From NCBI RefSeq assembly GCF_001194135.2, contig NC_068985.1, positions 19,676,382 through 19,740,381 on the forward strand: 64,000 bases of DNA. Direction: 5' to 3'. Origin of the DNA: Octopus bimaculoides (taxonomy: Eukaryota). Positions 47,601 to 53,272 of the stretch are shown piece after piece. The notes beneath the pieces were generated by a model. It made no database searches. It saw nothing but the letters and a program-made list of their open reading frames with translations, and had not been told where the DNA came from. Position 1 is the stretch's first letter, and each line of letters opens with the position of its first letter. The translations under genes and the position numbers were made by a program.

Positions 47601-50600
47601 AGATTTCTTGGCATAAGTGCACCATCCTGACATGGTGCACTTATGTCAGGATGATTGATTTTCACAGGTTTGTTAGATTTCATATGAAATAGCACATTTC
47701 TCATGTGATGTTCTTTTAATGTTATTAGGTGCAGAGATTTGCATTGCTACACCAGGGCGTCTTATAGACTTCTTAGAAGCTGGTAAAACAAATCTTAGGA
47801 GAACTACATATTTAGTTATGGATGAAGCTGATAGAATGTTGGATATGGGCTTTGAACCACAAATTAGAAAGATTATGGAGCAGGTTCGGGTAAGTAATTA
47901 AAGTTTTTTGTCATTACTGAAAATATTTGACTTGGTCTTGTGTCTTGAGTTTTAGTTTACAAACTTTTTATTATTTTCCTTTTCTAGCCCGACCGCCAAG
48001 TGCTTATGTGGAGTGCTACTTGGCCAAAAGAAGTGAGATCATTAGCTGAGGAATTCCTTAAGGACTACATTCAGATCAACATAGGTGCTCTGCAACTTAG
48101 TGCGAACCACAATATTTTACAAATAATTGATGTTTGTAATGAATCTGAGAAAGATCACAAGTGAGTATTATTTCAGCTGCAATAGTTTTGAATGTTTTTT
48201 TTTTTTTTTATGTATACGTATGTGTAAGCATGTATTCAAATGTTTTAAATTCTATTAATTGTAGATTAGTAAAGCTTCTAGAAGAGATAATGAATGAAAA
48301 AGAAAACAAAACATTAGTTTTTGTTGAGACTAAACGGAGAGCAGATGAGTTACAAAGAAGAATGAAGCGTGATGGGTAAGTTACATTTATGCATGAATAC
48401 TGCCATATTGTTATACTCAGGTTGATATATTTGCTTTAGGAAGCTGTATTTTATTTGATTTGTTTTCTAGGTAATAAAAAATGTTATGGGAATATAATAG
48501 TATATGGATTTTGTTCTGTATTTCCTAGTTTGAAAATGTTAGGCTTTTTGGAGGATGGGAGCACAAAGTTCAGATTTTTTTTTTGCTGTTTTGTCTCTAG
48601 ACTGAGCATTTAGCTCTGCCTACACCACTTCAATGAACCAAAACTGATGATGGTTGATATCTTTAAAAAAAAATTTTTTTATAATTCCAATAAATCACCC
48701 CATTATTGCTGGTTTGATGAAATGAGAAATATTTTATCACAATGTTTTCTTCTGAAATAATGATTTGGATGTTTAAAACTTGATTAACCTTTAGTCTCCT
48801 GATCAAATTTCTATGAAAAGCTGTTGGTACATTTGTATTAGACTGACTACTTGGTATTAATAGAAAGGTTAATCTTTTTTGTATGGGTTGTTTTTGAATT
48901 TGACAAATCTGTGTGTTAAATACACATCAGTGTGGTGAGGGCTTTTCACTTTCCTAATAGTTCTTAGTGCAGATAGGTGTGGTGTTTGCACTTACTCAAA
49001 GCTATGAAATAGTAACCGTATTACATCTACATGCATTTGTTAAACTATTTTTTCAATCATTTTCCTTCAGCTGGCCTGTTATGGCTATTCATGGTGATAA
49101 GTCACAACCAGAGAGAGATTGGGTGTTAAGTGGTGAGTAACAATTCTGCTTTTGATTTTAACTTTGATGACATCATTTTCGCAATTCAGCACTATTAAGT
49201 GCAACTGTCAGATTTGAAGATTACCCATTTATCTTTTCCTTTTACAGAATTCAGAACAGGGCGTATACCAATTATGATTGCTACTGATGTTGCATCTAGA
49301 GGCTTAGGTTTGTATAAAACTGAAGAAAGGTCTTCACACTTTTCTTTTATTAATTACATACTTTTAAATGTTGAATTTGTAATAACTCATAACTTAAATT
49401 TCAAACTCTCTCCAGAGTCTCATTAAGAAATGTTAAAACTGAAATTAATTTCATTTAAAGTACATTTAAATTTGAATTCATAAACATTCTTTAAAGAGTA
49501 AATATGAAATGATTGCATTGGTTACAGTACATAACTTGTAATGTTTGAGTACGTGTGTGTGCATGTGAGAGTGAATGATAAACAACTGCTTTGGTTGTTA
49601 ACTCTTCTGCTTTATGTCGCAGTAATAAGTTCTAAGTCTCTTTTGGCAGCGGAACATAGAAAGTTACTGATGCAGGCTGGACCGGCATGACTACTCTCAA
49701 GAGCTGAGGGGAAGGTGCAGAAATTTTCCTCTTCAGTTGTTGACATCCAGAAAGTAATAAATTTGATGATTCTTAGTGCTGAGTTCCCCCGACCTGGCGT
49801 GAGGAATTCAGGTGGTGATATTGGAGAACAAGTTCCAGTTTCAAGACTTGACCTGCACAAGCAGCAGACCTGTCTTGGACAGTTAAATGGCACTGGCTTT
49901 CCTTTCTTTCAACTTCATCTTATTTTTGCTTCACCCCCTTTTTTCCTCTTTTTTTTTCTTTTTTTTTTTTTTAACCAGAATTTTCTGGGTTAATGCCTTT
50001 TTATTTGATAAACACTTTTCTTTTTCTTTTTTTTTTTTTGCCCCCATTTCACAAGTTCAATAAAAATGTAGTGGCAATAAAATAGTATGCATTACTGGCA
50101 CTGACCTGGATCTAGGATTTTCTCACACAAATCTGGTAAGGTATAGTACTGAGTGTTGCTATTCTGTCTGGAAACACCTAAGATTGAAACTGCTGGGTAT
50201 TGGTATAAACTGATGCTGTTTGCTTTTCAGTGAGTAATAAACAATGGAGAAGTGTTAAAGGTGAATGTGTGTGTGTATGTAAATATAACTTTTGACATAT
50301 TGTTTGTGCTATGTTTAATCAAGGTTTGAGTCCTTGTTAACCTTTCTTGTGTTTTCCTAGAGTTTAACTGCTTTTTAAGTTGATGTAAAAGTACATACAA
50401 ATCATATTTTGTCAACTTGTAATTTTCAAGAAGTTATAGTATATTGATTTAAGGGCTATTAAAGTGTTTCCATGTTTAAACCTGTTAAAGCAGCTATAGA
50501 TTGTCCATAGTGAATTAATCCTCTAAGTTACATGAGATTACCTTAAAAATTTTTTAGTTATTTTGTAGCAAACTAAGTCCTATTATTGGTTCTTTCATCT

Positions 50601-53272: not shown

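Follow-up and report, generated by a model that had tools for sequence, protein, structure and literature searches.

Does the long intron that interrupts the helicase-coding region of the Octopus bimaculoides DDX5 gene serve to regulate the gene's own expression? The gene lies within a stretch of 64,000 nucleotides (nt) of contig NC_068985.1 (assembly GCF_001194135.2, positions 19,676,382 to 19,740,381, forward strand), here called the window, whose coordinates are used throughout. That the helicase genes DBP2, DDX5, and DDX17 share a conserved, poorly spliced, and probably autoregulatory intron is already established, and an original prediction, made from the letters of the window, held that the same regulatory device is present in this mollusc. 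The homologous position of the intron, its retention in RNA, the selection acting on it, and the motifs it shares with other animals bear this out; control of the intron by DDX5 itself may be assumed by analogy.

The gene was identified as DDX5 because its spliced product is 100% identical to annotated O. bimaculoides DDX5. Junctions from RNA sequencing (RNA-seq) define 13 exons on the plus strand between 38945 and ~53401, separated by introns 1 to 12 of 4875, 167, 99, 1518, 124, 1167, 98, 104, 695, 115, 2365, and 605 nt. With GT at 49308 and AG ending at 51672, intron 11, the penultimate one, has exactly the borders and the length of 2365 nt expected for it. It ranks second in size among the 12 introns and is thus the longest after intron 1, as had been claimed; half of the introns had been described as short, and 6 of the 12 measure 98 to 167 nt. 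The intron stands in phase 1 after the G of an Asp codon, the downstream reading being D VDDIKF, and lies between helicase motifs V and VI (...ASRGL G/../AT V..., with slashes at the intron borders). When it is retained, translation meets its first in-frame stop, TAA, at 49424-49426. Motif VI (HRIGRTAR) is encoded in exon 12, beyond this stop, and the read-through product therefore lacks it; both points agree with the original prediction. Most other DDX5 introns have the donor GTAAGT or GTGAGT.

Retention of intron 11, which had been proposed as a check, was followed in three raw RNA-seq runs of 2026 (X37, X38, and X39) and in contigs from older runs. The comparison covers O. bimaculoides only, as the RNA runs of "organisms B-D" from the same study come from unrelated species. 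Counting unspliced against spliced reads, 41% (X37), 28% (X38), and 24% (X39) of the transcripts were unspliced at the intron's 5′ splice site, and the depth directly 5′ of the 3′ splice site amounted to 35 to 50% of that of exon 12 in these runs. Read depth was continuous across the intron, with ~100 to 250 reads per orientation against 300 to 570 in the flanking exons. Introns 1, 4, 6, 9, and 12 showed a depth of 0 to 7, so that intron 11 was covered about 100 times as deeply as the other long introns. Since the other introns have almost no reads, neither genomic DNA nor generic pre-mRNA can be the source. Contigs in X10, X12, X14, and X29 spanned the whole intron together with the edges of exons 11 and 12, and 97 to 100% of the sampled 31-mers of the intron were present in all 20 RNA runs indexed as holding it. 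These results show that intron 11 is selectively retained, being spliced inefficiently with an accumulation of intron-containing transcripts. As the coverage is continuous with the exons and the motifs described below are strand specific, we infer that the retained RNA is in the sense orientation. Neither read-end pile-ups marking a poly(A) site nor A-to-G editing sites were seen in intron 11 in the RNA runs, and no internal splice junctions were found within 49240-49900 or 50700-51780 in X37 to X39.

The intron was then compared among cephalopods by mapping the exons onto the loci of O. sinensis, O. vulgaris, Argonauta hians, and Acanthosepion (Sepia) pharaonis. The position of the exon-intron junction is identical in all four, and the intron measures 2370, 2371, 2222, and 3209 nt, respectively, whereas the other introns vary several-fold in length. 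Identity of intron 11 to that of O. bimaculoides was 98.2% in O. sinensis, 85.6% in Argonauta, and 71.7% in Sepia, compared to mostly 87 to 93%, 46 to 64%, and 44 to 58%, respectively, for the other DDX5 introns, the latter two ranges being at noise level. Introns 4, 6, and 9 had been named as the yardstick of divergence; with 87 to 88% (O. sinensis), 46 to 50% (Argonauta), and 44 to 56% (Sepia) they are unalignable at the Argonauta and Sepia distance, and intron 11 diverges far more slowly. An identity so far above that of the other introns indicates purifying selection, as the original prediction had it.

The conservation profile resolves into block A, a small block, and block B (Table 1). 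Blocks A and B, which are 80 to 98% identical to cuttlefish, coincide with two CpG clusters that had been noticed beforehand, and the core of block A (49603-49757) is better conserved with respect to cuttlefish than the flanking exons. Block A starts with the 3′-splice-site-like CTCTTCTGCTTTATGTCGCAG, a pyrimidine tract and CAG at 49603-49623, and an AATAAA/ATTAAA hexamer at 49757-49762 closes its core. The donor is GTTTGT or GTTCGT in all cephalopods, GTTCGT being that of Argonauta and Sepia. Since the indels are not multiples of three and all frames contain stops, the blocks are not coding. The open reading frames of the intron are short on both strands; one of 93 amino acids on the minus strand over block A was rejected as coding because indels of 1, 2, and 5 nt interrupt it in Sepia.

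Position and phase of intron 11 were confirmed in seven further bilaterians, namely, Mytilus, Patella, Ylistrum, Haliotis, Ptychodera, Branchiostoma, and Oryzias. The intron is 1.4 to 3.2 kb long in all 11 other loci and is the longest intron in Patella and Ylistrum. The donor GTTTGTA[TC] is common to five lineages (Octopus, Mytilus, Ylistrum, Branchiostoma, and Ptychodera). Plain blastn of octopus intron 11 against the mussel and limpet introns gave no significant match, and homology beyond the cephalopods was recognized through a cephalopod profile and motif searches. With the cephalopod intron profile, nhmmer matched the scallop intron at block B (E = 3.6e-10). The motif searches revealed a collinear series composed of A1 (CGGCATGAC), B1 (GTCATGTCG(G)..CCTGCC), GGGACTTTGCTT, GAGCAAAGTGCC, m2 (ATGCATGCTCCC), ACCCTGGGGTT, AAGGTAAGT, ACCCAGGG, and m6 (GGGAGTGTGCAT).

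Among the 10 taxa of the cross-phylum set, the B1 core GTCATGTCG is exact in nine and is confined to the orthologous intron when 274 kb are searched on both strands. The A1 core CGGCATGAC is exact in Octopus, Argonauta, Sepia, Patella, Haliotis, Ylistrum, and Branchiostoma and has one mismatch in Oryzias and Ptychodera. Exact copies of m2 occur in Octopus, Argonauta, Sepia, Ylistrum, Haliotis, and Ptychodera, with variants that keep the pairing described below in Mytilus, Patella, and Oryzias; m6 is present exactly or as a pairing-preserving variant in 10 of 10 taxa. Both 12-mers, m2 and m6, are identical among octopus, abalone, and acorn worm. Within the 274 kb the motifs occur almost solely in the orthologous intron and on its sense strand, two stray A1 matches being the chance expectation for a 9-mer. 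Profiles built from molluscs only gave the same picture in the deuterostomes. The top hit of the B1 profile to whole deuterostome loci had an E value of 1.6e-5 in amphioxus, 1.1e-4 in acorn worm, and 0.07 in medaka, and the A1 profile matched amphioxus at the orthologous site (E = 0.007). The m2 and m6 profile matches were individually weak, all of them lying in the orthologous intron and in the correct order. As the motifs are shared with deuterostomes, the content of the intron is homologous and not its position alone. A metagenome scan for the series GGTAAGT...ACCCAGGG...GGGAGTRTGCAT gave no match.

Several of the shared segments resemble splice sites. GGTAAG occurs four times in intron 11, compared to twice in 9567 nt of other introns, and 9 of 10 taxa have at least one copy between m2 and m6. 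The scallop counterpart of decoy 1 (Table 1) is CAGGTAG at the same place, and ACCCAGGG is exact in six molluscs and amphioxus. Junction reads of the three RNA runs never used the internal GGTAAG sites as donors.

Other segments are mutually complementary and are predicted to form long-range helices. H0 joins 49672-49692 to 51003-51021, 1.3 kb apart in octopus and 0.35 to 1.8 kb apart across taxa; H1 is the 12-bp duplex of m2 and m6 (51319-51330 with 51514-51525); and within H1 most molluscs have the inner helix H2, ACCCUGGG : CCCAGGGU. H1 closes each taxon's own minimum-energy fold of the m2-m6 region (RNAfold), and RNAalifold with eight taxa predicted exactly the 12 H1 pairs. One of these pairs takes the form U-A in bivalves and C-G in the limpet, as against U.G in cephalopods, abalone, and acorn worm, and a second changes from G.U to A-U in medaka. 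The H0 core of 9 to 11 bp is invariant, including a G.U pair, with its end pairs exchanging U-A for A-U and C-G for U-A. Pairing is kept in 96.6% of cells for H0, where two pairs changed on both sides, and in 92% for H1. The flanks of H0 differ by taxon, yet they are complementary: ACAGAGCAGGT / ACCTGCTCTGT in abalone, GGGAGG / CCTCC in amphioxus, and GCAGG / CCTGC in octopus. Including these flanks, the H0 duplex energy ranges from -29 to -43 kcal/mol, and among 236 to 593 windows the B1 window was the best or second-best partner of A1 in all nine taxa having A1. On the antisense strand the invariant G.U pairs would turn into C-A mismatches, from which it follows that the element functions as sense RNA.

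Taken together, we think it probable, though by no means certain, that intron 11 is orthologous to the regulatory intron of DBP2, DDX5, and DDX17, which is conserved and poorly spliced, and that it works as a structured, helicase-sensitive detained intron. Directly supported are the homologous position, the weak conserved donor, selective retention, purifying selection, the Bilateria-wide motifs, and the complementarity of these motifs. In the mechanism that we propose, the authentic 5′ splice site (GUUUGU) is weak, its weakness itself being conserved, and interior elements of the intron would pair over a long distance in the sense RNA, H1 enclosing two or three perfect U1-type sites (GGUAAGU) that are never used as donors. 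The helices would form in vivo and be remodelled by the helicase activity of DDX5; through this remodelling, decoy U1 sites and GCAUG motifs would become accessible and use of the weak authentic 5′ site would be disfavoured. A rise in helicase would thus increase retention and lower the amount of mRNA, which would constitute a negative feedback. The large stable fraction of transcripts that keep the whole intron could encode only a truncated protein without motif VI, so that functional DDX5 output would depend on the efficiency of intron 11 removal. The direction of the loop follows published data from yeast and human cells, and its logic parallels that of the plant DEAD motif. Judging from its abundance, the retained RNA probably stays in the nucleus instead of being degraded by nonsense-mediated mRNA decay (NMD), and its high steady-state level is compatible with a detained intron. 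A contribution of Rbfox-type cofactors, suggested by UGCAUG in m2 and GCAUG in A1, would be speculation. More tentatively, and with greater doubt than confidence, we put forward that these parts form a real and new module of more than 550 million years of age, present in protostomes and deuterostomes, in which the GUUUGUA donor, CCGGCAUGAC : GUCAUGUCGG, and AUGCAUGCUCCC : GGGAGUGUGCAU caging GGUAAGU would enable the helicase to sense its own activity. If true, it would be an animal counterpart of the plant DEAD motif and a rare non-coding RNA element that can be aligned between mollusc and chordate.

Several points weigh against this explanation. Regulation of intron 11 retention by the DDX5 protein is derived from work in yeast and human cells, the raw-read libraries are unstranded with RNA selection and tissue of origin not given, and the cross-phylum set is bilaterian only, with human, DDX17, yeast, and non-bilaterian sequences outside it. 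Mytilus lacks A1 and B1 and hence H0, and in Branchiostoma m2 is degenerate and H1 contains no GGTAAG. Covariation on both sides of a pair is sparse (three pairs), because the helix strands hardly vary, and such invariance also fits sequence-specific protein binding. Pairing in 93.9% of cells in register versus 29 to 49% with the register slid is an inflated contrast, because the helices were derived from the same sequences. A column-shuffle control was weak, with 7 of 500 shuffles reaching the observed percentage paired and 40 of 500 the covariation score. Finally, A1 (49672-49692) has an equally good alternative partner in Octopus and Argonauta at 51291-51337 (-36 to -39 kcal/mol), upstream of and including m2 (GAGAG...CCAGCC...), which is not among the top partners in Sepia. 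This predicted pairing, possibly mutually exclusive with H0 and H1, means that the true fold may differ or switch.

The splice-site-like sequences also allow the interpretation that cassette or alternative terminal exons coupled to NMD are defined by the GGTAAGT sites of block B together with the 3′-splice-site-like beginning of block A; inclusion of such exons would destroy the mRNA, and their splice signals would account for the conservation. Ultraconserved poison exons are reportedly typical of splicing regulators, as Lareau and Ni are said to have described in 2007. The intron offers the necessary signals, with the pyrimidine tract and CAG at 49603-49623, the polyadenylation-signal-like AATAAA/ATTAAA at 49757-49762, and three consensus 5′ splice sites within 51410-51464, and a poison exon has been reported in human DDX17 (PMC12894984). 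However, at a local depth of 200 to 500 the three runs contained no junction reads entering block A or starting from the GGTAAG sites, which limits their use to less than ~1%, no read-end pile-up marked a poly(A) site, and the dominant alternative form is retention of the whole intron. Low-level inclusion might persist because NMD could hide its products, but overall we regard a poison exon as unlikely; a decoy role of the internal sites without splicing is compatible with the detained-intron explanation. The conserved blocks might instead belong to a hosted non-coding RNA gene, such as a microRNA (miRNA), a small nucleolar RNA, or another stable intronic RNA, with retention arising as a side effect of processing. 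Lineage-specific miRNAs are numerous in coleoid cephalopods. A sliding-window fold of the intron detected, as its only miRNA-like hairpin, a short one of ~20 bp at ~49697-49743 in block A (z = -2.8), and by the title of Moore et al. 2011 (RNA 17:555), as cited in PMC4695336, the conserved p68/DDX5 intron encodes a miRNA. Rfam, however, gave no match with E <= 1 in intron 11 and none at gathering score in the window (small-RNA reads lying outside this search), coverage of the intron is continuous with the exons, and conservation extends over ~1.1 kb including splice sites and branch point rather than over a unit of 60 to 150 nt. As the deeply shared motifs moreover pair across 0.2 to 1.3 kb, unlike a local pre-miRNA hairpin, a hosted RNA is improbable.

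Two further explanations do without a regulatory RNA. Deeply conserved non-coding elements are usually enhancers, and conserved blocks with kept CpGs could be protein-bound, unmethylated DNA, that is, an intronic enhancer or a chromatin or methylation boundary to which retention would be unrelated. Yet the conserved features are strand-specific RNA signals (GGUAAGU, branch point, pyrimidine tract, and G.U pairs possible in the sense strand only), and the conserved segments complement one another, their flanks compensating in a taxon-specific manner, which an enhancer would not need. The position of the element is also the same throughout, one intron of a gene for a housekeeping helicase, and it coincides with the selective retention. 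This renders a DNA-level function highly improbable. Passive slow splicing without a regulatory role would explain retention by the length of intron 11 and its weak donor GTTTGT, but intron 1 (4875 nt, donor GTTCGT) and introns 4 and 6 are long as well and have ~100 times less coverage. As the conservation is extreme even between phyla and the weak donor itself was kept in five lineages, passive lag is strongly disfavoured, and we give it hardly any weight.

The original prediction had called the intron SINE-free and CpG-retaining (SINE, short interspersed nuclear element). Its CpG counts were exact: 5 in 49615-49800, 13 in 50820-51360, and 1 in the 1019 nt between them, corresponding to observed/expected ratios of 0.53, 0.49, and 0.04. 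For intron 11 as a whole the ratio of 0.26 is ordinary for the gene (0.25 in intron 4 and 0.38 in intron 12), and 7 of its 20 CpGs are kept in Sepia. What is informative is the clustering, since each of the two CpG blocks falls on a conserved block; the retained CpGs are better taken as a sign of sequence constraint than as a feature of their own. The absence of SINEs could be checked in part. No repeat of intron 11 was found elsewhere in the 64-kb window, a search that is a weak test for SINEs, and the lengths on the octopod side are nearly constant (2365, 2370, 2371, and 2222 nt). Two T-rich tracts 66 nt apart at 49940-50050, in the least conserved stretch of the intron, capture reads and contigs from many other loci and show depth spikes, chimeric joints, and apparent C>T variants at 49958, 50020, and 50026; they are low-complexity or repeat-tail sequence.

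Other observations were made on the gene and its neighbourhood. Intron 1 (39150-44024) contains 148 CpGs at a ratio of 1.16, compared to 0.06 to 0.38 in the rest of the gene body, and looks like an unmethylated promoter-proximal domain beside a methylated, CpG-depleted gene body. Two alternative first exons, 38415-38674 and 38945-39149, are each joined to exon 2 at 44025, by 36 and 199 junction reads, respectively, in X37, and probably explain the annotated isoforms X1 and X2 (746 and 733 amino acids). Very high RNA contig depth with many loose read ends at 55592-56255, 39250-39360, and 46204-46226 probably marks expressed, SINE-like interspersed repeats, located outside DDX5 or in its other introns. 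The segments 33001-34000 and 59001-61000 are extremely AT-rich, with a GC content of 0.17 to 0.22 versus a window mean of ~0.35. A gene for an RNase PH-domain protein resembling an exosome subunit lies head-to-head with and directly upstream of DDX5 in Sepia and Argonauta (loci L001, 1-920, and L006, 1-387), and this synteny is conserved between the two. The amphioxus gene spans 70 kb, far more than in the other taxa, and its locus (Branchiostoma lanceolatum, L010) contains at 58275-58418 and 58512-58655 tandem copies, 94 nt apart, of the exon coding for C[VL]VL[CA]PTRELAQQV...DLERG, which are candidate mutually exclusive exons.

Table 1. Features of the intron 11 region of O. bimaculoides DDX5 (window coordinates; a slash within a sequence marks the exon-intron border of a splice-site-like motif) and lengths of orthologous introns
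Feature	Position or length	Strand	Evidence or remark
Exon 11, including the G of the Asp codon; motif V region	49248..49307	+	RNA junctions, translation, DDX5 match 100%
Intron 11, phase 1, selectively retained	49308..51672	+	GT..AG junction 49307/51673, read depth
5′ splice site GTTTGTA, weak, non-consensus	49308..49314	+	sequence; cross-species comparison
In-frame stop TAA upon retention	49424..49426	+	translation
Block A; core 49603-49757 with ~98% octopus-cuttlefish identity	49603..49860	+	conservation profile
Motif A1 (GCAGG CTGGA CCGGCATGACT), 5′ strand of predicted H0, contains GCAUG	49672..49692	+	motif search, duplex energies
Minor conserved block; 5′-splice-site-like CTG/GTAAGG at 50133-50141	50108..50207	+	conservation profile
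Block B; most of its length 92-100% identical to Argonauta, 80-92% to Sepia	50798..51672	+	conservation profile
Motif B1 (AGTCATGTCGG AAA CCTGC), 3′ strand of predicted H0	51003..51021	+	motif search, profile search
Motif B2 GGGACTTTGCTT; exact in cephalopods and Patella, one mismatch in Ylistrum	51059..51070	+	motif search
Motif B3 GAGCAAAGTGCC; <=2 mismatches in all molluscs and amphioxus, collinear	51295..51306	+	motif search
Motif m2 ATGCATGCTCCC, 5′ strand of predicted H1, contains UGCAUG	51319..51330	+	motif search
ACCCTGGGGTT, 5′ strand of predicted inner helix H2, pairs with 51453-51460	51398..51408	+	motif search, fold
Decoy 1, consensus 5′-splice-site-like CAG/GTAAG	51410..51417	+	conserved in cephalopods; no junction reads
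Decoy 2, consensus 5′-splice-site-like AAG/GTAAGT	51430..51438	+	exact in 7/7 molluscs; no junction reads
Palindrome CTTACC-CAG-GGTAAG; ACCCAGGG as 3′ strand of predicted H2, plus third GGTAAG (GG/GTAAG)	51450..51464	+	
Motif m6 GGGAGTGTGCAT, 3′ strand of predicted H1	51514..51525	+	motif search, fold
Branch-point-like CCTACTAAT (TACTAAT), pyrimidine tract, and 3′ splice site, conserved	51604..51672	+	alignment
Exon 12 (HRIGRTARS, helicase motif VI)	51673..51909	+	RNA junctions, translation
Orthologous intron, Mytilus galloprovincialis	1952 nt		
Orthologous intron, Patella caerulea	1424 nt		
Orthologous intron, Ylistrum balloti	1955 nt		
Orthologous intron, Haliotis rubra	1797 nt		
Orthologous intron, Ptychodera flava	1681 nt		
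Orthologous intron, Branchiostoma lanceolatum	2146 nt		
Orthologous intron, Oryzias latipes DDX5	1427 nt		

DDX5 and DDX17 act as master regulators in splicing, transcription, and miRNA processing and are sensitive to dosage; the control of their level in animals is known only in outline. A close precedent for the octopus intron is that of yeast. Intron 2 of S. pombe dbp2 is removed inefficiently, and both its position and its length are conserved (Kilchert et al. 2015, PMC4695336); according to that paper, which cites Iggo 1991, Barta & Iggo 1995, and Moore 2011, the same intron position is found in yeasts and human. A helicase-dead Dbp2 mutant of S. cerevisiae relieves retention, as summarised in PMC4695336. 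Octopus intron 11 has in common with the yeast intron its place between motifs V and VI, an unusually great length within its gene, and inefficient splicing; the yeast intron, whose position and length are conserved (PMC4695336), sets the level of spliced mRNA, and the octopus intron would do likewise. Autoregulation through the intron has been demonstrated in yeast (PMC4695336), whereas for the octopus it is assumed by analogy. The two also differ in that S. pombe dbp2 uses Mmi1 and the exosome as effectors, acting at TNAAAC, whereas the octopus intron has predicted long-range helices and decoy 5′ splice sites.

A second precedent comes from the vertebrate genes. In human cells, partially spliced nuclear pre-mRNA of p68 and p72 is cleared when p68 is knocked down (Jalal et al. 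2007, PMC1920232), by which autoregulation was suggested in human cells, and retention of the Ddx5 intron was found in all five vertebrates tested (Schmitz et al. 2017, PMC5688624). Medaka DDX5 has the intron at the same position and phase, and retention is a feature that the vertebrate DDX5 and DDX17 introns have in common with that of O. bimaculoides. The medaka intron shares with the octopus GTCATGTCG..CCTGCC and a helix like that of m2 and m6 (ATGCATACTCC : GGAGTGTGCAT) enclosing GGTAAG sites, but differs in its more diverged motifs and its donor GTCAGT. The intron conserved from yeast to human thus exceeds mere position, as it has alignable elements and complementary strands across animal phyla. 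Our literature search, with Moore et al. 2011 outside it, found no report of cross-phylum sequence conservation of this intron, of the recurrent GUUUGUA donor, or of long-range helices enclosing decoys. With concrete nucleotides to mutate, the autoregulation hypothesis (Barta & Iggo 1995; Jalal 2007) becomes directly testable.

Conservation of non-coding sequence between protostomes and deuterostomes is rare, and a clear case at the RNA level bears on the evolution of both splicing and genomes. Detained introns and decoy exons are said to have been described in mammalian RNA-processing genes by Boutz and colleagues in 2015 and Parra and colleagues in 2018. The octopus intron resembles detained introns in being a single highly conserved intron that is kept in many otherwise spliced transcripts and contains unused internal splice sites, but the depth of its conservation between phyla is far above the usual for this class.

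A parallel from outside the animals is provided by plants, where DRH1 senses its own activity via structured intronic RNA (bioRxiv 10.64898/2026.01.23.701338). Like the structure predicted for the octopus intron, the plant DEAD motif of DRH1 and RH46 is a conserved intronic structure at the closest plant homologues of DDX5 that involves splice-site sequence; it masks a splice site, and its proposed opening by the gene's own helicase leads to non-coding forms and hence to negative feedback. The plant motif is a local stem over an alternative 3′ splice site and acts through alternative splicing followed by NMD, whereas the octopus intron has predicted helices of 0.2 to 1.3 kb that enclose 5′-splice-site-like sequences and is retained as a whole. 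An independent origin of the two is likely. The octopus locus suggests that plants and animals may have reached the same logic, that of a helicase reading RNA structure in its own pre-mRNA.

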